DNA from: Rebecca billardiae RCC1528
Lineage: Eukaryota > Protista > Haptophyta
Reading direction: 5' to 3'
Assembly (NCBI GenBank): GCA_965240325.2
Contig: OZ251222.1
Span: 3,658,001-3,722,000 of the forward strand
Length of the DNA stretch: 64,000 bases
Of this stretch, positions 1-51,337 are shown piece after piece. The first letter of the stretch is position 1. Each line of letters begins with the position of its first letter. The notes beneath the pieces were generated by a model. The model worked only from the letters and a program-made list of their open reading frames with translations. It had not been told where the DNA came from and ran no database searches. The translations under genes and the position numbers were made by a program.

Positions 1-593
1 GCCGCACCGACTGGGCACGCCTCGCCTTCACCGTGCACCTCGGCTCGCGCGACGAGCCGGCCAGCGACGACGGCACCGACGCACCGTCGGAGGAGCGGGG
101 GGAGGCACCGAACGTCCGCTCGATCAAGCTCGTCGAGGACCGCTGCGCTGGCGACTCGTCCGCGATCCGCATCGGCACTGACGAAGCCCTGCCCAAGCAG
201 TTTGACTGGCCGCTCGCAGAGGAGCGCGAGGCGGTGGGCTCGCTGCTCAAAGCCGAGCCGACGATGCGCACCATCCTCGCCGTGGCGTACCCGACTTACC
301 TGGAGGCCAAGCAGCGGGTCTTTGCGCACATCGAGTCGACGTGGCGCGCCGATGGCTGCAGCGAGGTGGTGGCGGACGGCGAGGGTGGGTGTGTGACGCC
401 GCGATCTGCTGCGTGGCCAGCAGGCATCTGCTCACTGTCGGACGCGCTCACCGTGCTGGAGATCATCGAGAAGCTCGAGCCTATGCTGCGCGAGCAGGTG
501 GGCGTCAAGCAGCCCTCGCTCAACAGCCTCACCAACCTGTCCACGCTCTCGCTCGCCAGCACCGTGCACAACTCGACGCCTACTGCCACCTGA
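1..593 (+). CDS. 3' end of a gene truncated by the window edge; unknown product
   Basis: GC3-biased, protein-like reading frame running from the window start to TGA at 591-593. The C-terminal ICSLSDALTVLEIIEKLE is only weakly reminiscent of Gfo/Idh/MocA oxidoreductase C-termini. Confidence 0.6.
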   Translation, partial: RTDWARLAFTVHLGSRDEPASDDGTDAPSEERGEAPNVRSIKLVEDRCAGDSSAIRIGTDEALPKQFDWPLAEEREAVGSLLKAEPTMRTILAVAYPTYLEAKQRVFAHIESTWRADGCSEVVADGEGGCVTPRSAAWPAGICSLSDALTVLEIIEKLEPMLREQVGVKQPSLNSLTNLSTLSLASTVHNSTPTAT

Positions 594-1270
594 GCGGTTC
601 GGCCCCGCTCCGGGGGCGCGGAGGCGGCCGGGAGGCTGCACTGCTGTGACGAACCGTCAGGCGCGGTCAGCATCTATCACTATCTGCATCGCGGGCCACA
701 TCGGCAGTCGTCAGGCTTCAGCAGTCAGAATTCGGCACCGGCTTCGCGTCGACAGTATATATATCTAGCTGCCAGCTGGCGTCTCTGGCTCTGTCTCTCT
801 CTCGGCTCTCTCTAGCTCTCTAGTCTCTCTCTCAGTCTCACTTCTCAGAGTCTCAGACAGACAGACTCTCTCTCTCAAGCTAGGACCCTCTACTTCCACG
901 ACGTATCGATCGTGCGGTATCGTCCGGCGGACGAGTCGTCGCTCACGGCTCAGCCGATCATCACTACGAAGCCGGCCTTGAAACGACCAATCAAACGCTT
1001 CTGGACCGTTGACGCGGCCGCCTCAGTGACTCACTCGGCCCTCACTCCTCACTCAGGCTCCGGGACCGGGGGCCGCGGGCGCTCCGAAGGCCGCCCCTCA
1101 CAGTCGCGGAGTGTCGTCAAACATATCAATGCTTGACTCAGCCCCTCACTCAGAGCAGTGAACACTTGACTCAGCGACTCTGTCTCAGACATCGTGCGTA
1201 GCTACTCACGTCTCACTGCGTACAATGAACAATGCGTACAATTACATGCCGCCTCCCGCTCGCCGAGTAG

Positions 1271-2428
1271 CTAAGACGACGACGAGACGATGCGCTCGAC
1301 CATGGTGCCGTCGGCGATAGAGCTGCAGAGGCACGCATTGCACACAATGCCCGCGCCTCGCACCCACACGAGGCGCTGCTGACCCTCCCCCGCGGCTGCG
1401 CACTGCGCCCCAAGGTTCCAGCCGCACTGGCTCATGCCGGTCCCCGCCTCCGCGCGCGCGCGCCCAGCCTGCTCGGCCAGATCGGCTTGCGACGGAACCG
1501 CCTCGATGGCAGCGTCAAGCCTGTGCTCGCTCAGCGCCGCTTCGACTCCGAGCGAAATGTCGTGCGCCTTCGACGCAACCCAAAGCATCCACGAGCCGTC
1601 ACTCGCTGCGTTGGTGCGCTGGAGCATCATGCGCGCGTGCTGCTCGATGCGCACCGGCTCGCCGTGCTCTCCGGTGTCCCAAGCGCCACCGCTCGCGGAG
1701 ACTAGGCCAGGGAATGCGCCGAACTCGAAGAACGGGGTGTAGCCCGGCTGCGTCTGATACACCATGCGCTCGAGCGTCGCCAGCTCCGTCTGCAGGCGCG
1801 CCTCGTACGCGTCATCGCCCGCGCAAAGAGCAACAGACGGGCGTGAGTCCTGGTCGTGCTTTGCCAGCGCCCGCGCGGTGGTGCCGAGGGCATTGAGGGA
1901 GTCGCCGATGGCCTGCAGCCATTGCGCCTCGAAGACTTTCGTGGGCGTACGCTTCTGCACGCGATAGGCGCGCGCGCTCTTCTCGAGCGCGACGCGGTGG
2001 TCCCCGCTGCGGCGCAGGCACTCGATGAGCACCCAGGTGGCTTTGTGGTGGCCATCATTCAGCTTGGTCGCGCCGACGGCGTCGACCTGGGCCGCCATGA
2101 GGTCGCCGAGCTTCAGGCGGCAGATGGCCCGGTTGGTAAACAGGATCGCCGCTTCGCGCAGCTTCGCCGTGTCGCCGCCGATGGCGAACTGCAGCGACAT
2201 CGCCTCCATCATCCCCGGCGGCATGCTGTCGGCCGAGCCGGCGCGTGCTGCGCCGACCGAGTCGCTGTCATCGGCAGCCGGCGGGTGCGCGTCCCGACTC
2301 GCTCCAGATGAGCCCCAGCCGTCGCTTACCATCTGCTGGATAGCGCGCGTGTACTCCGCCGCCGCATCTGCGTACCTCGCAGCCTTGAAGAGCTCACCGC
2401 CGCGCGCCCTGGCGTCGTCACGAGACAT
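1271..2428 (-). CDS. TPR-domain protein (co-chaperone-type TPR at N-terminus)
   Basis: GGELFKAARYADAAAEYTRAI and AILFTNRAICRLKLGDLMAAQVDAVGATKLND match the TPR consensus of Hsp70/90 co-chaperones. The C-terminal part is unassigned. Confidence 0.8.
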   Translation of the reverse strand: MSRDDARARGGELFKAARYADAAAEYTRAIQQMVSDGWGSSGASRDAHPPAADDSDSVGAARAGSADSMPPGMMEAMSLQFAIGGDTAKLREAAILFTNRAICRLKLGDLMAAQVDAVGATKLNDGHHKATWVLIECLRRSGDHRVALEKSARAYRVQKRTPTKVFEAQWLQAIGDSLNALGTTARALAKHDQDSRPSVALCAGDDAYEARLQTELATLERMVYQTQPGYTPFFEFGAFPGLVSASGGAWDTGEHGEPVRIEQHARMMLQRTNAASDGSWMLWVASKAHDISLGVEAALSEHRLDAAIEAVPSQADLAEQAGRARAEAGTGMSQCGWNLGAQCAAAGEGQQRLVWVRGAGIVCNACLCSSIADGTMVERIVSSSS

Positions 2429-3621
2429 CGGAACCAGGGCCGGCGGGCGTACAATTTACTTTCATGCGGTGCCGACTTTTTTTTAAAATATGGGTTGGCG
2501 CTGCGCGTCAACTTGGGCTGGAAACCTGTTTCTGAAACGCACGATGGCAGCTCGCGGCCGGTGGCTCGAGCTCGGAATTCCGACGCTGCCAAGGGCGCCA
2601 CAGGGGCGCAGCGGCGGGGCTGACGACGCGCGCGCGTGTGCACGTCTGACCACGGAGTGCGCGCTGCAATGACCGGCCCGTCTGCAGCACCACGCCCCGC
2701 GCTGTGAGTGAGAGTGTGGCCCGCGCCCAAGCGAGAACGCGGGCCGGGCGGCACTCCGCCGACCTCGCCGGCCGCCGACCAGCCCGCGGCCGCCTGCTGC
2801 AGCTCGTGGAACACGCAGTCGCGCGCTCGCGCGTGGAGGGCGGACCTGCGCGTATGCGCCCGCCGGGCTTGCCGCTTCATCCGCTGGCACCGCAGGCGAG
2901 CCGCTCGTCGCGCGCAATGCAGGTCGAGCCCTCCGCCGCCACGGCGAGCCGGCGCCACGCCTCGCGCTCGTGCTCGAGCTGAGGCGGCGCGTGTCGCCCG
3001 AGCCGGCGGGTTCGCGCGCGTGCGCGTGGTGGGCAGCCTCGCGCGTGCGCCCGCCGCGCGCCCCGCGTCGCTCGCTTGGCGCCGCAGTGGGCTCACCCGC
3101 CTGTCGTCGTGGCGTCCTTCACGGGACGTCGTCGACGCGAGGCCGCGCGAGGTTGCTCCGATGCTCGTAGTCCAATGCAAGATGATACCCGCGTGCCTCT
3201 ATCAACGCGCCCTTTCGCTCGTGAAATGTGTGAACTCGCGACACGACGAATAATGGGCCGATGCGATTCGCGCGAATGTGAGCACGCAAAGCGCCGAACG
3301 ACGAGCGGTTTTTGACCGAACGACGAGCGGCTTTTGCCCTATCGCGCGCGTAAGCGGGTACGCGAATTGCGCTTATGTGACCGACACGTGAGTGGGCGTC
3401 AAATAAAGGCCCGCGACGGGCTGGTCCCCAGCGTGAAGTCGTGCCTTTGTTCTCGTGGGTTTCCAGAATTCCCCTTTATAACGGGCTCCGGGCCGAGCGA
3501 GCGACCGCAGCGCGCAGTTGAGTAATGAGAATTTAGTAATCAAGGTAGTATGTGTGTAGTGATGGCTACAGAACAGTAACGAGCACTGCTGCGTGACACA
3601 TACGTAGTACCCGACGCGCTG

Positions 3622-4899
3622 CTACATCTCGCCGGACTCACCCAGGCGCGCCTGGTGCGTGGCGACCGTATCGAGCGCGTCCTCGATCATGCCGCGCAGC
3701 GCCTCGACCTTGCGCTCGACGCGCGCGTGCTTGCGCTCCTGCTCCTCGGTTGACGCTGGACCCGCAGCGCCCGGTCCGGATGACGACGTCGGCCGCGGCG
3801 CGCAAAAGGCCATGGGCTCGTCGTCGCGCGCGCTCAGCTTGGCGGCGACGGCGCGCACGTACCCGTGGTAGCGCGCGAGGCACTCGGCGACCTGGTCGAT
3901 CCATTGCACCTCATCGCCCGGCGGATCGCGCAGCAGCGCGTCGATCGCGCCCACGCGCCGCCGCGTGCGCGAGAGCTCCTCGCTCATCGCATCGACCGTC
4001 GTGAGCGGCAGCTGCTCGCCAGCCTGCTCTGCATCCATGCCGAGCACGCTGTCGATGCGCCAGCCGCGCGCGCGCTCGCCCAGGCTGCTCCCGGCCGTGG
4101 CTCGGCCCGCGTGCGGCCGCTCGGCGCTGCGGTGGCGCAGGCCGTCGCCGTGTGTCTCCGCGCGGGCGCTCGCCGCACGCTCGTGCGCGGGCGGGCCCAT
4201 CGCGGCAGACGGCGCGCGTTCCCCAGTCGCGTCGTCATCGTGCTCGCACGTGTCGAACGTCACCGCGTCCGCCGACGCGCTCGCGGCGGGCGGCCGCCCG
4301 TCGTCCGAGCGCACCCGCTTGTGCGCTTTTTGTTCCGCCGGCGGCTGCGGCCGGCGCAGCGCGTCGTCCAGCCCCTCGACGCCGTGGGCGGAGTAGCGCA
4401 CGCAGCACGCGCGCCCGAGCCAGAGCACGTCCCCGTGTCGTATCGGACGCTCGCGCGAGTCGTCGGGCAGGCGCTCACCGTTCAGGAATGAGCCGTGCGT
4501 CGAGCGCAGGTCGCTCGCGTGGAATGTCGAGTTGCTCGCGTTCGTCCGATCGGCGCGCCAGACTAGCTTGCAGTGCCTGCGAGAGACGTTCGGCGCCTCC
4601 GGCCCGAACTGAAGGTCGAGGGCATACATGGCATTCCTCCGCCCGATGACGTAGGACCCGCGAGCGGCGTTCAGAGGCCACGTCGCAATGTGCGTGCGGC
4701 TCTCCCACGCGATGAGCGTCGGCAAGAAGGGCTTACGCAACGGCGGTGGAGCTGCCGCTCGCGCTGGAGACACCGAAGCGGGTGGCGTGGGCGTGGACAC
4801 GTCGCCCGCGAGGGCACGCTTGGGTATGCGAAATGCCTTCGCGCGATGCGCGGGCGGGTCGCCCTCGGGCGCGCCCCCTGCCGCATGTTGAGTGGGCAT
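3622..4899 (-). CDS. FHA-domain protein with C-terminal coiled coil
   Basis: FHA motifs YVIGR, VSRRHC, DLRSTHGSFLNG, IRHGDVLWLG. First ATG at 4899 (MPTQH). Confidence 0.85.
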   Translation of the reverse strand: MPTQHAAGGAPEGDPPAHRAKAFRIPKRALAGDVSTPTPPASVSPARAAAPPPLRKPFLPTLIAWESRTHIATWPLNAARGSYVIGRRNAMYALDLQFGPEAPNVSRRHCKLVWRADRTNASNSTFHASDLRSTHGSFLNGERLPDDSRERPIRHGDVLWLGRACCVRYSAHGVEGLDDALRRPQPPAEQKAHKRVRSDDGRPPAASASADAVTFDTCEHDDDATGERAPSAAMGPPAHERAASARAETHGDGLRHRSAERPHAGRATAGSSLGERARGWRIDSVLGMDAEQAGEQLPLTTVDAMSEELSRTRRRVGAIDALLRDPPGDEVQWIDQVAECLARYHGYVRAVAAKLSARDDEPMAFCAPRPTSSSGPGAAGPASTEEQERKHARVERKVEALRGMIEDALDTVATHQARLGESGEM

Positions 4900-5182
4900 T
4901 CTGCGCAGGGTCTGGAGAGTTACAGAGTGGAGAATGATGAGCCACCAGCCCGTGCACCACCCTTGCAAGTGCCCACCCAACGGTAGAGTCCGGCTGTGGT
5001 CCGGACCCCCAGCTTTTTTTTCCTAGGCGGGTATCTCGCGCTCGACCGACGTGATCAAGGCATTCAAGCCGGCTTGACGAGTCAGTGCGGAGGTCCTGCA
5101 CCTTGAACCTGCTCCAAAAGGCCGAAGCTGCTGACGACGAAGAGCAGGCAGCCCAGCCCGAGCTGGAGCTCTTCCGCGACTG

Positions 5183-7081
5183 ATGAGCGCTCTCGCGCCG
5201 CGTGGGGGCGCGGTGGCCGTCGCGTGCGGCGTTGGGGGCGTCGTGGCCGGCGTACTCATCTCCGATCACGCGAGGAGGCTGCTCGCACGGCTGGGCGTAT
5301 GGGCGGGCGTCTCTGGGCGCAAGCGCGTGTCACTCGTCCTCTCGGACGATGAGCAGCACTCGCTGGCCAATGCGCTGCATGACGAGGGCCCCCACAGTGA
5401 CGAGGAGATGGACGAGTCGGACTGCCCACCAGCGCGCACCGCTCGCTCGGCGTCCATGTCCCCCGAGTTGGAAGCTCGGCTGCGCGGCGCGGAGGCGCGT
5501 CGCAAGTATTCGTTCGAGCCCATCTTTGACAAGGAGGGCACGCAGGACAAGGAGGACATCGTCCCCGCCGTGGCGATCTCCGCCCCCAGCCCGAACAGCT
5601 CGAGAAACCCGAGTCCCCGCACGTCCGTCCGGTTGAGGCGGGACCGCGCCCGCACCGGGAGCGGCAGCGCGCCGCCGCCGCGCAGCCGCAGCATGTCGAC
5701 GTTTGCGGCCGGGAAGACACAGATCGAGCTCGCGAGCCACAGCGTGCGGGCCATGCTCCAGTCCGAGCGCGAGGACTTTCGGCAGGCGGAGACTGTGCTG
5801 TACGTGACGAAGCAGGTCACGTCCGACGACGTCCTCGTCGAGGTCGAGCGCGTCGTCTCGCCCTCGGAGGAGCTGCACGCGTCCTTCAAGCGCGTGGGCA
5901 GGCGGTCCGCCTCGGACCGGCGCAACTCGTGGTGCCCGTCCGCGGCTCTCAGCGCGAGCGCGAGCACGCGCGGCTCGAATGCGTCGGCGCAGTCGCCGCA
6001 CGTCGGCGCGACGTGCGACGTGGCCGAGAGGGACGTCACCGAGGACTTGCCGCTGCCCACCTTCCTGAGCATCCAGCCGGCGCCGCCGCTCGACCGCACG
6101 CCGCTCAGCACGCCGGCGGTGCACGCCTGCCTCGCGCACGCGTCCGAGTGGGACTTCGACGTGTTCGAGCTCGAGCGGCTGACGGGCGGGCACGGGCTGG
6201 TCGCGCTGTGCGCGCACCTGCTCGCGCCGCCGTGCGCCGCGCTCGGCGTCGACGTGGCGAGGCTGCACCCCTTCCTCTGCGCCCTCGAGGCGGCGTACCG
6301 CAGCGACGTGACCTACCACACGTCGACGCACGCGGCCGACGTCGTGCACGGCACGGCGTGGCTGCTGCGCGCGCACATGGTGCCCGACGCGCACTACTCG
6401 CCGCTGCTGGAGCTGGCGCTGATCATCGCCGCCGCCGCGCACGACGCCGCGCACCCCGGCGTCAACGCCGACTTCCTCATGAAGACCGGCGACCCGCTCG
6501 CGCTGCTGTACAACGACAAGTCGATCCTCGAGAGCATGCACGCGAGCGTGTGCTTCCGGCTGCTCTCCGTGACCGAGAACGGCGCGCTCGACGACCTGGA
6601 GCCGGGGGCGCGCAACCAGCTGCGCGCGTGGACGATCAGCTCGATCCTCGCGACCGACATGAAGGGGCACTACCCGATGATGGGCCGCCTCGCCGAGGCC
6701 GACCCGTGGCGGACCAGCTCAGAGCTGGGCGACGAGGAGCTCAGCTTTGCGCTCGGGCTGGTGCTGCACGCCGCCGACCTGTGCGGGCCCATCAAGCCGT
6801 CGGTGGTGGTGCGCTTCTCGAGGAGGGTGGCCGAGGAGTTCTTCCTGCAGGGCGACCGGGAGAAGGCGCTCGGCCTCCCCGTCACGGACGGCTTCGACCG
6901 CGTTACCAGCATGGAGCGCTGGCCGCAACGCAACGTCGCGTTCATCGACTTCATCGTCAAGCCGCTCTACGACGCGCTGCACACCGCGGCGCCCGACATG
7001 GACATGACCGCGTGCCAGGAGGGCCTCGTCGCGGCCAAGGCGGCCCTCGACGAAGCGGACTGGGCGATGCCCATCGAGTGA
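5183..7081 (+). CDS. Class I 3',5'-cyclic nucleotide phosphodiesterase with N-terminal hydrophobic anchor
   Basis: PDEase_I motifs WDFDVF, YHxxxHAADV, HDAAHPG, YNDKSILExxH, ILATDM, LHAADL, EEFFLQGDREK, FIDFIVKP. Confidence 0.95.
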   Translation: MSALAPRGGAVAVACGVGGVVAGVLISDHARRLLARLGVWAGVSGRKRVSLVLSDDEQHSLANALHDEGPHSDEEMDESDCPPARTARSASMSPELEARLRGAEARRKYSFEPIFDKEGTQDKEDIVPAVAISAPSPNSSRNPSPRTSVRLRRDRARTGSGSAPPPRSRSMSTFAAGKTQIELASHSVRAMLQSEREDFRQAETVLYVTKQVTSDDVLVEVERVVSPSEELHASFKRVGRRSASDRRNSWCPSAALSASASTRGSNASAQSPHVGATCDVAERDVTEDLPLPTFLSIQPAPPLDRTPLSTPAVHACLAHASEWDFDVFELERLTGGHGLVALCAHLLAPPCAALGVDVARLHPFLCALEAAYRSDVTYHTSTHAADVVHGTAWLLRAHMVPDAHYSPLLELALIIAAAAHDAAHPGVNADFLMKTGDPLALLYNDKSILESMHASVCFRLLSVTENGALDDLEPGARNQLRAWTISSILATDMKGHYPMMGRLAEADPWRTSSELGDEELSFALGLVLHAADLCGPIKPSVVVRFSRRVAEEFFLQGDREKALGLPVTDGFDRVTSMERWPQRNVAFIDFIVKPLYDALHTAAPDMDMTACQEGLVAAKAALDEADWAMPIE

Positions 7082-7628
7082 GGGGTCTCGCGCGGATGAC
7101 GGCGCGCGAGCCCCGCGCTGCCGTGCTGCTTGTGCCCCGCCGCCGGCGACGGCCGAGGCCGCGCGTGGCATCGAGCTCTGAGGCGGCCTGCTCCCCGCCG
7201 ATCTCTGCTCTATAATAATTTAGTATTTACGTCGACGTCGTCGCGCGAGGAGCATGAGACACGCGTGCGCTCGTGACATGTGACTCACTGTGACGCGGTC
7301 TGAGGAGCCAGCTCGCGAGGGGCTGCCTGTGCAGACAGAGTCAGAGAGTGTGACTAGTGAGCCAGTCGACGGACGGACCGTCACCGTGCACCGGGTCCGG
7401 GACTGCAGAGTGACTCACTCAGTGAGCCAGTCCATTCGTCACCTGATAGGCTGATTGGCGCACTACTCTAGAGACGGTAACAGTGCCGAGTGCGGCTGTA
7501 GTAAATAATAACTACGCGATATATGATCATGATGTCGATGACGATGATGGCTAGCAGTTAGTTATGTAACTCTACTACTGTGAGTTACTGTCTACTCAGT
7601 ACTAGTACCGTGCGCTCCGGCTCATTAG

Positions 7629-7631
<3 letters not shown>

Positions 7632-7686
<55 letters not shown>
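7632..7686. repeat. (GA)n microsatellite
   Basis: Perfect AG dinucleotide run of about 55 bp. Confidence 0.95.
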
Positions 7687-7689
<3 letters not shown>

Positions 7690-7737
7690 ATACGGTCCGC
7701 CCATAGTAGTACGGAATCGTACTCGGCCGCCCCGCTA

Positions 7738-8249
7738 CAGGCAATCGCGGGCAATAAGAAGTCAGAGATCTCACTGCTAGCCTCGGTTTCTTAGCCGTTC
7801 GGTAGCCCGAGCGCCTACGGAGTCTCAGTTTCTTAGCTAGGTCCGCCCGCCGCGCAGCGCAGGGGGGCAGAGCCCCCCGCTGAGTCTTTAGGCCCGGCCG
7901 GCGAGGCCGAGGGAAATTGTGGGCCTTTTTGGAGCAAATCTGGCATGAATCCCATGATGTTGCATGGATGCTGCGGTGCACTGGCCAGGAGTCAGTCATC
8001 AGGAGAAGTCGGGACTTGGCCTGAACTCGTAGTCGGGCCGCGCGCCGCGTCCCCGACGCGGGCCGACTGCGCCTCGCCCTCGGCGGACCACTCGTCAGCC
8101 GGGACGACGTAGTCCCGGTTTCTTAGTGTGACTATGCGTATAGCGAACCAGCCAATCGCTAGACGCTAGTCTCAGTTTCTAGGCCAGATCCGCAGATAGC
8201 AAGCCCCCGTTTCTTAACGTGACAGCTCCTTATTGCCCGCGATTGCCTG
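7738..8249. mobile_element. 512-bp MITE, Tc1/mariner-type ends
   Basis: Perfect 21-bp TIRs CAGGCAATCGCGGGCAATAAG (7738-7758) and CTTATTGCCCGCGATTGCCTG (8229-8249), flanked by TA on both sides. No transposase. Confidence 0.9.
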
Positions 8250-45579: not shown

Positions 45580-47654
45580 GGCGGACCGCCGCTGGCCCCC
45601 CCCCCCGCACGCCGCCGTCGGATAGAGCTCTCAAGTTACCGGATCATTGGCCCGGACCGCACTTTTTCTTTCTCTATAACCGCGCGCGCGTCGCGCTCCT
45701 TCTGGCGATCCGGTGTTTACGATAGGCGGATGCAGGGGTTGCCTGGGGCCGCCAGTCGCCACGGGGGGGGGCAGGGCGGCGAGGCAGCGCCCGCCCGGCA
45801 GCACATCGCCCCCCCCGTGGACGCTGACTCAAGCCGCACCCACCCCAGCGCGGCGATCCCACGCCAGGGAGGGCGGGCGGGAGGCGGAGGAGCGCCGCTG
45901 GCTGTCCGTGAGTGTGCCGGCGCCGCCGCGGCCTGCCGCCCGGGGGCCCCGGGCCCGGGCGGGGCCGCTGTGCTCAGGCGTCGGCCGGGGCAGGGTGCGC
46001 CGGGGGGCAGTCGCGGCGGAAGCGGTCGGCTGCACGACGTGGGCTGCCCTGACCGGCCCCGAAGGTGCGCCTGTCACGCCGAGGGTCGGCCCTCCTGCAG
46101 GTACGCTCACTTTCCGCTTGGTACCCGCGCCGCAAAGGCGAGCTGCTTCCGACTCACATCTCGTCACCGTGCGGTCACTCCGGCGATGCCGCTGCGAGCG
46201 CCGAGCCCGCGTCCGGCCAGGTATACGCCCACCTAGCGGGGAGGGGCACGGGCGGCGGCGGAGCAGCGACGCGGCAGTCATAACGCGATAACCGCCGCGG
46301 ACTGCCAAACCCACCACTCCCGTCGCGTCGGCCATCGCCCCATAACCGCGCGCGCGTCGCGCTCCTTCTGGCGATCCGGTGTTTACGATAGGCGGATGCA
46401 GGGGTTGCCTGGGGCCGCCAGTCGCCACGGGGGGGGGGCAGGGCGGCGAGGCAGCGCCCGCCCAAAGAGGCGCAGCGCCAGGCGCCACGCCGGCGTGGCC
46501 GGCGTCGGCCGGCGCGGCCGAGGCCAGGCCCGGCCCCGACCCCCAGAGGCGCAGCGCCCTGCCCACCACCACGCCGCACGCCGCCGGTGTGAGGCCGCGG
46601 AGCGGCGGACTGGGTGCCCCCCCCCCCTCCCCCCCAGCGCTCAGCCCCTGCCAGAGGTCGCCGAGAGCCCGCAGCGACCGGCGGACCACAGGACCACTGG
46701 CGTAACCCGCCCGTCGTCGCGCGCCGGCACAGGCCAGGCGAAGCGCTGCAGGTGACCCGCAGGCCACGCCGTCCACTTGCCCGACGAAACCGCCCAGCAG
46801 CACGCGCGCACCGCCGCCGCCGCCGCCGGCCGGCGAGAGCGCATGCGCCCGAGCCGTCGCGGAACACACCCGAGCCGACATGAGGCGCAGGTATCGACGT
46901 CGGCTTGCCGACAACGTCGTCAACCACGCGCCTGCAGACCGCACGAGCGCCCGTGAAAGCGCGCCGAAAAGGGGCGTGCGAGGTGACGCGCACGGTGCGC
47001 GAATGGTGATGGCCGTGCGGCGCACGAATGACGATCGGTGCGCGCGCACGATGAGCGGCGCACGCGCGGGCGGATCGGAGCGCGCGCATGATAAACGGCG
47101 CATGATACTCGGCGCGCGCGCATGACGGCGCGCGCGCATGATGATCGGCGCTGGTCGGTGCGCGCGCATGATGATCGTCACGCGATGATCGGCGCGCGCG
47201 CATGACCATGCGCGCGCGTGACGAATTCGCCGCAACGGCTCGCGCGAGAGGCACAAGGCGATTGACGATGAACGCGACCACGTTCGAGCGCTCGAGCGAA
47301 GCAGGAGGTGATGAGTGAGGAAGATGGCACAGGAATGGGAGAGGAACGCGTGGCGCGTGGCGGGAAGGGCCAGGCACGCTCGGCGTGAGGAAAGGAACGC
47401 GCGTAGAAACGGAACGGAACGGAAAGCAGCGGTTCGAGCGATAGACAGGAGGTGATTGACGACGATGAGCGCGTGCGCGCTCGAGCGACGCAGAAGGTGA
47501 CGAGCGAGGAAGACCAAGGCCAGGTGAAAGCGCCGCAGGTGGCCAGCGGGCCACGTCGCTTTTCGCGCCCGAAAACGCCCAGCAGCGCGCGCGCCCCGCT
47601 GCAGTGGCAGCCGACCGGCGAGAGCTGCATCCGCCAGAGCCGCCACGCGGCGCA

Positions 47655-47945
47655 GGTATCAACGCCGGCCCGCCGACAACGTCGTCCCCGACACCCCGGC
47701 CACAGACACCACGTACACCCATGTAAGCGCGCCGAAAGGTGCGCGCGAGGATGGCGCACTCGGCACCCGAATGATGATGATGGTTGCGCGGAGCACGAAT
47801 GATGATCGGCGCGCGCGGGTATCAACGCCAGCCCGCCGACGACGTCGTCCCCCACGCCCCGGCCACAGACACCACGTACGCCCATGTAAGCGCGCCGAAA
47901 GGTGTGTGCGATGATGGCACGCTCGGCACCCGGATGATGATGCGA
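47655..47945. repeat. ~160-bp tandem duplication inside the element, with a diverged third copy near 46890-47010
   Basis: GTATCAACGCC..CCCCGGCCACAGACACCACGTAC..CCATGTAAGCGCGCCGAAAGGTG occurs twice. Confidence 0.85.
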
Positions 47946-48073
47946 TGGTTACGCTGAGCACGAAGTGATGATCGGCGCGCGCACATGATGATGATCGGCG
48001 CGCGCGCATGAGAAGACAGGTGCGAGTGACGCGCGGAGAAGATGCGCGCGGAGACGATAGGCGCGGAGGACAT

Positions 48074-48673
48074 AGGCGCAAGTAACGCGCGGAGGAGATA
48101 GGCGCAAGTAACGCGCGGAGAAGATAGGCGCAAGTAACGCGCGGAGAAGATATAGTAGGCGCAAGTAACGCGCGGAGACAGGCGCAAGTAACGCGCGGAG
48201 AAGATAGGCGCAAGTAAACGCGCGGAGAAGATATAGTAGGCGCAAGTAACGCGCGGAGACAGGCGCAAGTAACGCGCGGAGAAGATAGGCGCAAGTAACG
48301 CGCGGAGAAGATATAGTAGGCGCAAGTAACGCGCGGAGACAGGCGCAAGTAACGCGCGGAGAAGATAGGCGCAAGTAAACGCGCGGAGAAGATATAGTAG
48401 GCGCAAGTAACGCGCGGAGACAGGCGCAAGTAACGCGCGGAGAAGTAGATAGTATAGGCGCAAGTAACGCGCGGAGGAGGTATAGGCGCAAGTGACGCGC
48501 GGAGACAGGCGCAAGTAACGCGTGGGGAAGTAGATATAGTAGGCGCAAGTAACGCGCGGAGAAGTAGATGGGCGCAAGTGACGCGCGGAGACAGGCGCAA
48601 GTAACGCGCGGAGAAGTAGATAGTAGGCGCAAGTAACGCGCGGAGATGAGATAGGCGCAAGTGACGCGCGGAG
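48074..48673. repeat. Minisatellite: 22 copies of AGGCGCAAGTAACGCGCGGAG with 2-13 nt purine-rich linkers
   Basis: Counted by eye. Linkers cycle AAGAT / AAGATATAGT / AC. Confidence 0.95.
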
Positions 48674-48727
48674 AAGATAGGGTGCGCACACGATGATCGG
48701 CGCATGATGATCGGCGCGCGCGCGAGG

Positions 48728-48806
48728 GATAGACAGATAGACAGATAGACAGATAGACAGATAGACAGATAGACAGATAGATAGACAGATAGATAGACAG
48801 ATAGAC
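48728..48806. repeat. (GATAGACA)n / GATA-GACA microsatellite
   Basis: Alternating GATA and GACA tetramers. Confidence 0.95.
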
Positions 48807-50343
48807 GCGCGAGTGAGCGACGGCGAGCTGTAGAGAAGGGTGAGTCGTGCGGCGGCGAGTGGCGGCGGCGTGCTTGCAGCGCGGCAGCGGCGTGCGGCGA
48901 GCGCGAACACGCGGAGCGCGCGCGGCTCCGCTGTTGCGCCCCGAGGGGCCCGCGCCGAAGAAGCGCGCTCGCTCGAGCGGGGGGCAGATCGAAGGTGATG
49001 AAGCGCGCGGTTCCGCTCAAGCGAAGTAGAAGGTGATGAGCGACGAGTGTGCCCGACGGACGACAGCGCAACGACACCTCACGCGCCGCCCCGCCGGCCG
49101 CCCAACAGATGGCCGAGAACGGGACGCCGAAGTAGCATGTGTGCGCTCACTGCCCGCGCCGCCGACATGCGCTCCAGCTCGGACGAAGGGCAGAAGGTGT
49201 TGTTGAGCGCGCCCCCGCGAGCGCGCAGCAGCTGGTGAGGAGCGTGTTGTTGAGTACGCCCCCGCGAGCGCGCAGCAGCTGGTGAGGAGCGTGGAGCGTG
49301 CCCGACACACGCCCGCTGGCGCCGCCCCGCCGTGCGCCCAGCCGCCGGACGCTGCCGATGGACGCAGAAGCAGCATGGATGCGCACGAGTCTCGTCCAGC
49401 GCCAAAATGCGCTCGCGCGCGAGCGAGGCAGACAGCGCCGAGCGCGCCCACGCTCGAGCGAAGCAGGTGGAGATGAGCGAGGAGCGCGCACGACGGACGG
49501 CAGCGCACCGGCACCTCACTTACCACCCCGATGTGCGTCCCCGATGTGCGCCCGGCCACCGGACGCCTCAGAAGGACACCCAGCACAAGCGTGGTCGCGC
49601 ACGAGCGGATGAGAGAAGCAGAAGGCGCTGAGCGTTCCCCTCGAGCAAAGCAGTGGGCCATGAGGAGGAGGGAGCACGACGGACGGCAGTGCCCAGCACC
49701 TCGCGCTCCGCCTCGCAGTGCGCACGACCGTCGGATGCCGCCGCAGAAGGACGCCGAAGCAGCATCGTGAGAGTTCGAGCGTGATGCACGCGCACCACGC
49801 CAGGGGGGGACAACGAGGAACGGGGAGCGAAGGAGGCGGAGGAGCGCCGCTGGCTGTCCGTGAGTGTGCCGGCGCCGCCGCGGCCTGCCGCCCGGGGGCC
49901 CCGGGCCCGGGCGGGGCCGCTGTGCTCAGGCGTCGGCCGGGGCAGGGTGCGCCGGGGGGCAGTCGCGGCGGAAGCGGTCGGCTGCACGACGTGGGCTGCC
50001 CTGACCGGCCCCGAAGGTGCGCCTGTCACGCCGAGGGTCGGCCCTCCTGCAGGTACGCTCACTTTCCGCTTGGTACCCGCGCCGCAAAGGCGAGCTGCTT
50101 CCGACTCACATCTCGTCACCGTGCGGTCACTCCGGCGATGCCGCTGCGAGCGCCGAGCCCGCGTCCGGCCAGGTATACGCCCACCTAGCGGGGAGGGGCA
50201 CGGGCGGCGGCGGAGCAGCGACGCGGCAGTCATAACGCGATAACCGCCGCGGACTGCCAAACCCACCACTCCCGTCGCGTCGGCCATCGCCCCGAGTTTG
50301 CGGGCCAACGGTCGCCAACTCAGGACCGCCCATCGACCACACG

Positions 50344-51337
50344 ATGGACGAGATCAAATGGCCCGCGGGCACCGACGGCCACTCGCGGCGGATCCTGTCG
50401 GGCGAGGCGAAGAAGCTCTTCTTCCTCGACGCGGCGGACTTGCGCGAGATCGGAGGTGAGTCCTTCGGCGGCTGGAGCCGCGCCACTTTCTATTCTGTCG
50501 GCTCGCTCAAGGCGTGTGCGCTGCGCAAGTATGGCGCGGCCACGCTGGCCAAGAAGTACGAGCGGCGGGCGAAGCGCGAGGAGGGGGTGCAGCAGATGCG
50601 GCACGCGACCGAGGCGCCCGCGTGCGCGTCGGGCGTGATCGACCTCACCGCTCCGTCGCCTTCCCGCCAGCCGCTCGCGCCGGGCACCGCGGCGAACGCG
50701 GCACAGGCCGACCCCGTGCGCGTGCGCGCGGCGCTGCTGAAGATGCTGAAGAAGCACATGGGCTTCGCCGAGTCGGGTGGGCCGGGCGACTCGAAATTCA
50801 CCATGCCTCTGATCGACAAGGCCACATTCGCCGCGCTCATCTGGCGCGGCGCCGACCCGACGCTGAGCAGTCTCGTGAAGCGCGGCGCGTGGTACCAGTA
50901 CTGCATCGGCTACGAGGACGTGCCGCGCTTCCTCGGCCTCGGCGCAGGCGGGAGCGCCATCTTCCCCGTGCGCTGGAGCCCCATGGAGGACCTGGACCAG
51001 GAGGTGGGCGCCATCTCGCTTGGCTGGAAGGAGTGCAGCGAGGAGCTCAACGTCTACGCACCGTGCTCATGGGGCGGGGAGGGCAGGTGTGCGCGCTCGC
51101 GCGGCGCTGGCTGTGAGACAACAGGCGTGCCACAGCCCGCGCGGGCGCCCACATCGACCTGCCAAGGCTCGCTTTGCGTGCGCGTGTACATCGCGCCAAC
51201 ACGCAGCCTCGAGGCCGCCGTGCCCCCTGCCCCATCCCCACCGCGCCACGCTCGCCCGCCACAGCTCGTACGATGACATCGTGACTGGCCAGCCGCCCAT
51301 CGGCAAAAAGTTCCGCTCCCTCGAGGGCGGGGCGTGA
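50344..51337 (+). CDS. Uncharacterised protein with XPA C-terminal-like helical motif; intron 51087-51264, about 271 aa
   Basis: EAKKLFFLDAADL...FY...ALRKYG...LAKKYERRAKR resembles the XPA DNA-binding subdomain. A GTGTGC..ACAG intron restores the frame to TGA at 51337. Confidence 0.65.

Follow-up and report, generated by a model that had tools for sequence, protein, structure and literature searches.

A young non-coding family with split direct repeats in Rebecca billardiae RCC1528 and its reverse-transcriptase-encoding relative

Introduction

How does an element that encodes no recognizable protein multiply in a genome, and why does it carry its two ends joined to each other within its own interior? 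These questions are raised by a 4.6-kb element of the haptophyte Rebecca billardiae RCC1528. It lies in a stretch of 64,000 nucleotides (GenBank assembly GCA_965240325.2, contig OZ251222.1, positions 3,658,001 to 3,722,000 of the forward strand), which we call the window and to which positions refer unless another locus is named. An original prediction, made from the letters of the window, had described a young non-coding element with two pairs of split direct repeats, A and B, and had proposed a recently active non-autonomous family. We followed this up by searching the 72-Mb assembly, which comprises 41 contigs. We found that the element belongs to a real, young, multi-copy family. It is probably a non-autonomous, non-coding member of the split-direct-repeat retrotransposons with PAT/Ngaro-type (DIRS-order) architecture, and its spread most likely uses the reverse transcriptase (RT) of a larger related family in the same genome.

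The layout A1-[ORFs]-B1A2B2 (ORF, open reading frame) is the hallmark of PAT, Ngaro and VIPER elements (PMC4157794, PMC8547959). TOC1 is a non-autonomous DIRS retrotransposon (PMC9940879) and Toc elements are listed among the PAT elements (PMC4157794). Solo AB repeats occur in Ngaro elements of Cafeteria (PMC8547959), and SIRE is a short non-autonomous unit of Trypanosoma cruzi that matches the A2-B2 region of VIPER (PMC6681497). Short junction sequences are thought to define integration sites in the DIRS order (PMC7192593).

Results

Split repeats and an internal end-to-start junction

Read on the minus strand of the window, the element has the layout A1(462)-internal(3368)-B1(122)-A2(462)-83 bp-B2(121) and a total length of about 4.6 kb. 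The predicted order of parts was confirmed. The parts are given below; a caret marks a junction in the sequences.

49832-50293, minus strand: A1, the 5' split repeat (462 nt), same as A2; its sense-strand start is GGGGCGATGGCC.
46464-49831, minus strand: interior without coding capacity (3368 nt), largely made up of tandem arrays and rich in purines on the plus strand.
48010-48681, no strand assigned: main internal tandem array, a 26-nt unit nested in 81- and 161-nt periods.
48728-48806, consisting of (GATAGACA)n, 47650-47983 and 49197-49293: other internal tandem arrays.
46342-46463, minus strand: B1, the internal copy of the 3' split repeat (122 nt), with the sense end ...GCGCGCGGTTAT.
46330-46348, minus strand: end-to-start junction core CGGTTAT^GGGGCGATGGCC, the end of B1 followed by the start of A2.
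45880-46341, minus strand: A2, the second copy of A (462 nt).
45797-45879, minus strand: spacer between A2 and B2 (83 nt), present in all copies.
45676-45796, minus strand: B2, the 3' terminal repeat (121 nt), complete in the window copy and ending in GGTTAT.
50233-50247, and again in A2 at 46281-46295, minus strand: tandem CGGTTAT and GCGTTAT motifs at A positions 48-62.
50294-50300, minus strand: target half-site 5' of the sense start, caaactc^ on the sense strand.
45669-45675, minus strand: target DNA 3' of the sense end, ^agagaaa, which is no duplicate of the other flank.

The plus-strand boundary at 46341/46342 (...CATCGCCCC^ATAACCGCG...) is the right terminus abutting the left terminus, as had been claimed. 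The near-identity of the repeats also held, with no mismatch over 462 nt between A1 and A2 and a single G in a homopolymer as the sole difference between B1 and B2. Because the repeats are 462 and 121 nt long at such identity, the layout is not a matter of chance. Within the element, GTTAT occurs at A positions 48-62 and at the B ends only.

The flanks of the window copy (tttctct^ and ^gagtttg) have no duplication in common and the element has no terminal inverted repeat. In a Pfam scan of its ORFs none scored above the family threshold; the ORFs are driven by the GC content, which ranges from 58% to 85% across the window. The earlier statement that target-site duplication (TSD), terminal inverted repeats and an RT or recombinase ORF are absent thus stood up. 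An Rfam scan of the element returned only sR3 at E = 0.11, and a hammerhead ribozyme was not found.

The element belongs to a multi-copy family with three subfamilies

With the element as query, the whole genome yielded 47 matches, ten of which run from position 1 to 4618 at 99.8-100% identity; these ten lie on different contigs, in unrelated surroundings. Overall, family copies lie on at least 20 contigs and have their exact boundaries in common while their flanks are unrelated. We then used the 19-nt junction core as a query and obtained 49 exact matches, 34 of which are accompanied by the B end that is characteristic of the family of the window element. The other 15 belong to elements with a different B, an RT-encoding relative among them. 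Probes from the middle and the end of A placed the number of A copies in the genome at 75.

The family falls into three subfamilies. Members of subfamily 1 are 4617-4619 bp long. Subfamily 2 (4.8-4.95 kb) carries an internal duplication and showed 93-95% identity to the window copy in the whole-genome search. Subfamily 3 is represented by L036 and L037 (locus labels are used where copies have to be told apart); compared with subfamily 1 it is 98-99% identical in A, about 90% in B and spacer and 67-80% in the interior, the 83-nt spacer itself being conserved to 90-93%. All three subfamilies keep the order A1-internal-B1^A2-spacer-B2. The check that had been suggested, whether copies elsewhere retain the four-repeat layout, gave a positive answer for the 34 elements with the exact junction and the family's B.

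A1 and A2 of the same copy differ at no position in 21 of 24 copies. L036 and L037 carry three A1/A2 differences each and are therefore older insertions. Some copies of subfamily 2 are distinguished by C-to-T at A position 48 and by A-to-T in B, and such a copy has the variant in both members of the pair. Long terminal repeats (LTRs) behave likewise, both members being made from one template in each cycle. Many near-identical copies, the identity of A1 and A2 within copies, insertion without TSD and the lack of coding capacity support the proposed recently active, non-coding and non-autonomous split-repeat family.

A solo 666-bp A-spacer-B unit exists once, at C21:1045070-1045735, and is the product expected of recombination between A1 and A2. 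At G000:C31:582000-602000, three to four family copies in both orientations lie within 20 kb.

In L012 (sense ~1500-1531) and L023 (sense ~1500-1553), A1 is cut by 29 nt and by about 10 nt, respectively. The truncated A1 is abutted in both by the same foreign sequence, which ends in ...ccgcaaattagcctaaacccaaaatatttgcc. This suggests another repeat family that inserted into, or recombined with, the start of A.

A larger relative encodes a reverse transcriptase and sets the polarity

The prediction had called for an autonomous partner. A Pfam RVT_1 search of the genome revealed several RT families, one of which is associated with the junction described above. This relative comprises seven copies with an RVT_1 open frame of 575/576 amino acids (aa), and the match (37 bits) is above the cut-off. 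The relatives are located at C1:3344700-3351600, C13:2781300-2788100, C11:70600-77700, C11:2484600-2491500, C18:217300-224300, C24:647600-654500 and C14:1852300-1859400. In all seven, the junction core follows as an exact match on the same strand, about 2.5 kb downstream of the RT match. In the three relatives listed, the RT is found about 3 kb downstream of GTGTTTT^GGGG, CGCTTTT^GGGG or GGGTTTC^GGGG, where the caret separates the flank from the match to the A start. The 5' ends of the RT-encoding relatives thus read TTTY^GGGGCG, the same target as that of the window element's family. In addition, a 25-nt block from the end of A matches at 23 of 25 positions in the relatives, at both A1 and A2, with an offset from the A start of about 403 nt as against 433 nt in the window element's family. 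The distance from the A1 start to the junction is about 6.04 kb in the relative, which would put its whole length at about 6.7 kb. Among the 15 elements that have the relative's A variant or are without the family's B, eight have an RVT_1 match and the rest are shorter derivatives. The partner search yielded an RT-encoding relative with the same junction; a matching tyrosine recombinase was not found by the searches described below, whose sensitivity is limited.

Because the relative reads A1, RT, B1^A2 in this order, the sense strand of the window element is the minus strand. This orientation also fits L040, an element with a recombinase that is described below, in which a 1286-aa ORF lies between A1 and B1^A2-spacer-B2.

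The genome contains a second RVT_1 set (584/585-aa frames, seven copies) and further RVT_1 families with very long open frames (1880-3371 aa; 2170 aa), none of them near the family's repeats.

The 5' junction is exact and the target is AT-rich

We compared the ends of independent insertions. The sense 5' end, GGGGCGATGG, is exact in 28 independent copies. The target at this side follows the consensus A-R-W-T-T-Y^, with T at -2 in 27 of 28 copies and T at -3 in 20 of 28, against a background A+T of only 28%. This half of the target, to the left of the insertion, is similar to CGGTTAT, with which the element's B repeat ends (on average 2.3 as against 1.6 of 7 positions match; P about 4e-4). At the other side, A is the first base of the flank in 10 of the 12 copies whose 3' end is complete.

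The flanks of 29 copies were examined and in general revealed no TSD. Removal of the element from L009 restores a perfect 40-bp palindrome, and that insertion therefore neither duplicated nor deleted target bases. An apparent TSD of 11-13 bp at L013 lies inside a tandem 10-mer and was not counted, and the apparent TSD at L011 is imperfect.

L024 (sense 5100-5470) has an additional piece at its 3' end. Its B2 stops at position 4548 and continues, through a CCC microhomology, into A at position 347, after which come the spacer and another B2. This partial duplication hints at a longer-than-unit or template-switched complementary DNA (cDNA).

Some flanks are themselves repetitive. L005 and L018, which belong to different subfamilies, have the identical flank (a)gctggcatccgccactgcagag directly after B2, which shows that both landed at one position within a different repeat. 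In four copies, gagacgcacacagctcaggcaggcgagat is found at a distance of 4-40 nt from the insertion point, in the 3' flanks of L007 and L016 and in the 5' flanks of L010 and L015. This motif is probably the end of another repeat with the same AT-rich target neighborhoods.

Observations that weigh against the classification

Several results weigh against counting the family among the tyrosine-recombinase (YR) retrotransposons with the relative as its RT source. They concern the 3' end, the kinship with the relative and the search for a recombinase.

First, the 3' end is heterogeneous, which clean two-sided site-specific recombination does not predict. In 29 copies, 12-13 ends are complete (GGTTAT), 7-8 are short by 1-4 nt, four have a 6-8-nt deletion in a (CG)n tract that keeps the terminal AT, and five are short by 69-124 nt, two of them ending at the same nucleotide. 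An overlap left by a staggered cut was rejected as the source of the 1-4-nt losses, as the matching 4-nt duplication was not seen.

Second, the relative is known from the coordinates of hidden Markov model and pattern matches. What it has in common with the family is limited to the junction core, the A ends and the target and does not extend to whole repeats: both the 25-mer from mid-A and B, save for its last 7 nt, differ from the family at more than three positions. A search with PF00075 (RNase H) gave no match at the relative's coordinates and is uninformative.

Third, a genome search with PF00589 gave five matches, all in one other family (L040/L034), and none with the window junction or at the relative; the L040 recombinase, used as a genome-wide protein query, returned the same five loci only. 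DUF3504 (PF12012) was found nowhere, the relative's coordinates included, a result that is uninformative since the control gave no match anywhere either. The sensitivity of these recombinase searches is limited. The only YR family detected in the genome, L040/L034, has the junction GGACAC^GTGGCGTTATA, which is kept in its two subfamilies.

A recombinase-encoding split-repeat family in the same genome

L040 (G000:C33:125000-134999, element at ~2146-7799) has the layout A1-ORF-B1^A2-spacer-B2. It contains one intact ORF of 1286 aa, whose only Pfam match is a C-terminal Phage_integrase domain (23.9 bits); no RT was detected by Pfam, and the first ~1100 residues are without explanation. Its flanks are (TA)n and (AC)n(AT)n, and its A2-B2 spacer measures 435 nt as compared with 83 nt in the window element. 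A 36-nt tandem array precedes B1 of L040, and a gene with RCC1 repeats adjoins the element.

We considered L031-L035 and L040 as direct autonomous parents of the window element and rejected them for their junction (GGACAC^GTGGCG) and their (TA)n targets. L040/L034 and the window family are otherwise without sequence similarity, save for two short features. A G(G/T)GGCG hexamer stands directly after the junction in both junction types. Motifs of the form (C/G)GTTAT are found at the B ends and at A positions 48-62 in the window family and at A positions 6 and 20-26 in L040, and nowhere else in either element. The core of the window family, CGGTTAT-GGGGCG-ATGGCCG, can moreover be read as an imperfect inverted repeat and in this form resembles the core sites of tyrosine recombinases. 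One enzyme could serve both kinds of junction; these features are leads, not proof. They make the L040/L034 recombinase a candidate for the integration of the window family, via the shared GKGGCG and (C/G)GTTAT sites.

Genomic setting of the window copy

The window element is located between two divergent ORFs, 44452-45579 on the minus strand and 50344-51276 on the plus strand. It ends 96 bp from the start codon of the left and 50 bp from that of the right ORF, and splits what was formerly a shared upstream region of about 145 bp. The left ORF has aspartyl-protease Pfam matches, all of them sub-threshold; the right ORF has no Pfam match. Elsewhere, too, the family is found in short promoter gaps between genes. 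It accounts for about 0.16 Mb of genome repeat, which is relevant to annotation.

Discussion

Comparison with known systems

The element shares three traits with the split-repeat YR group, namely the layout in which B1^A2 joins end to start, the identity within repeat pairs and the insertion without TSD. The defining recombinase was found neither in the element nor at the relative's coordinates, by searches of limited sensitivity. As in non-autonomous derivatives of the TOC1 and SIRE type, there is no Pfam domain, and the junction core, the A-end block and the target are common to an RT-encoding relative. We file the element as a TOC1/SIRE-like "non-autonomous split-direct-repeat retroelement", a putative member of the DIRS order by its architecture. 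A methyltransferase-like domain separates PAT and DIRS elements from Ngaro.

Ngaro and PAT-like elements are alike in the A1-[internal]-B1A2B2 order, the internal end-to-start junction, the missing TSD and the solo A-B units. In contrast to them, the window element encodes nothing, the defining recombinase is seen neither in it nor in its RT relative, A2 and B2 are set apart by an 83-nt spacer, and the 3' end is often shortened. TOC1 of Chlamydomonas reinhardtii is likewise non-coding, several kb long and multi-copy, with split repeats rather than LTRs and a presumed dependence on a coding relative. This likeness is one of description, and the host of the window element is another, very GC-rich eukaryote. 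Two further differences from TOC1 are an interior that consists mostly of private tandem arrays and a relative with an RT frame and no detectable recombinase. The 666-bp A2-spacer-B2 unit, with its one solo copy, is analogous to SIRE. SIRE, however, measures about 0.4 kb and is highly repeated on its own, whereas here the 4.6-kb composite is dominant and the solo unit was seen once. L040/L034, finally, resembles the window family in the order A1-ORF-B1^A2-spacer-B2, in GKGGCG after the junction and in the restriction of (C/G)GTTAT to the junction-proximal part of A, and differs from it in the junction and in its (TA)n/(AC)n flanks.

Other classes were considered and rejected. A Penelope-like element would be a partial tandem with a pseudo-LTR, variably truncated at the 5' end and exact at the 3' end, and would carry hammerhead motifs. 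It is contradicted by the ragged end, which is on the 3' side of the RT sense strand, and by the Rfam scan, which revealed no hammerhead. An LTR derivative (TRIM/LARD) would have two complete terminal LTRs and a TSD of 4-6 bp; the element has A at one end, B at the other and no TSD. Helitrons and Helentrons insert between A and T or between T and T, start with TC and end in CTRR with a subterminal hairpin. The plus-strand ends here are ATAACC...CGCCCC, and a 3' hairpin is not visible in the sequence. When metagenomes were scanned with the 19-nt junction, the two contigs returned matched over only 21-23 nt, which is chance.

Alternative explanations

A DNA-level, Crypton-like element would move without any RNA stage, as a DNA circle that a tyrosine recombinase cuts out and inserts again. 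L040 lends this idea some substance as a split-repeat element with a recombinase as its only recognizable gene, and conservative insertion without TSD at a target whose left half resembles the donor junction is what such an element would produce. We nevertheless consider it unlikely. The route does not readily explain a rise to 34 near-identical copies, and the subfamily variants that occur in both members of a pair point to regeneration from one template per cycle. Furthermore, the closest relative encodes an RT and no detectable recombinase, and shortened 3' ends are unexpected from the integration of a circle.

It is very unlikely that the element is instead target-primed, LINE- or Penelope-like, with its sense on the plus strand, an exact 3' junction at A, a ragged 5' end in B and B-x-A as a pseudo-LTR. 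The strand of the relative's RT makes the ragged end the sense 3' end, which is the opposite of target-primed truncation, and the shortening is limited to the last 124 nt and not spread along the element. The explanation gains some appeal from the contrast between one exact, target-specific end and one ragged end, and from the partial duplication at the ragged end of L024. The duplication of 11-13 bp that can be read at L013 would also fit, but it lies inside the tandem 10-mer, L009 is clean and TSDs are lacking in general. Nor did the Rfam scan of the element find a hammerhead ribozyme or other family.

According to the alternative offered in the original prediction, a 666-bp mini-element and a 3952-bp element stand in tandem. 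On the plus strand these would be B-x-A and B-internal-A, two elements with common termini that inserted head to tail by chance. Both units do start with B and end with A, and the 666-bp unit exists once alone at C21:1045070-1045735. That solo copy, however, is what recombination between A1 and A2 leaves behind, and a solo 3952-bp unit was not seen among the B-end matches. All 34 elements, in all three subfamilies, are composite and of the same order, A1/A2 and B1/B2 have copy-specific variants in common, and the ORFs of the RT- and recombinase-encoding relatives are set in the same composite. Two independent insertions are thus unsupported and highly improbable.

An assembly artefact or segmental duplication, for which only the B1/B2 homopolymer-length difference as a potential sequencing error could be cited, can be dismissed because the same layout recurs at 34 separate places, on at least 20 contigs with unrelated flanks and exact common boundaries, which also means that the element is not single-copy.

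A possible route of propagation

The reading that we prefer, a non-autonomous split-repeat retroelement that depends on the RT of its relative, can be combined with the published models for DIRS-1 (PMC7192593) and for split repeats (PMC4157794, PMC8547959). On these models, transcription would run from A1 towards B2 and yield a transcript shorter than the element, which the relative's RT would copy into cDNA. The internal B1^A2 would act as template for restoring the missing ends, which would explain why A1 and A2, and B1 and B2, agree within a copy. The restored junction between B end and A start, CGGTTAT^GGGGCG, would recombine with a target whose left half resembles it. The intermediate may be circular or tandem; among the copies, only L024 hints at one longer than a unit. 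Alternatively, a linear cDNA with a single junction might be joined at one end only.

The shortened B2 ends, which concern about half of the copies, may represent cDNAs in which restoration of the 3' end was imperfect or failed. Misaligned template switches in the (CG)n tract could account for the small deletions in which the terminal AT is retained, and the losses of 69-124 nt may mark 3' ends of transcripts. The A junction would then always arise by a sequence-directed step, and the B junction could come from repair.

What is unusual possibly concerns the group as a whole and not the window copy: the lack of a detected recombinase in the relative, the ARWTTY sequence as target and the raggedness of the 3' ends. 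As a tentative and rather doubtful extension, the TTAT^GGGG group, made up of the non-coding family and its RT-only relative, may integrate with no recombinase encoded by either family, by borrowing one or by a one-ended route. In the first case, the recombinase of a sister split-repeat family with another junction may be used via the GKGGCG and (C/G)GTTAT sites. If true, borrowing would amount to a three-part system, in which the RT, the recombinase and most of the copies reside in three element families. In the second case, exact sequence-directed joining at the A end may be combined with imprecise host repair at the B end, which, if true, would account for exact 5' and ragged 3' junctions.

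To our knowledge, no order of retroelements is less well understood than the tyrosine-recombinase retrotransposons, whose integration has yet to be reconstituted. The genome of R. billardiae offers a recently active set in which functions are apparently divided among non-coding, RT-encoding and recombinase-encoding families. Testable predictions on where transcripts end, how ends are restored and how they are joined to the target follow from three features of the family: the exactness of its 5' junction, its ARWTTY target and the shortening of its 3' ends.

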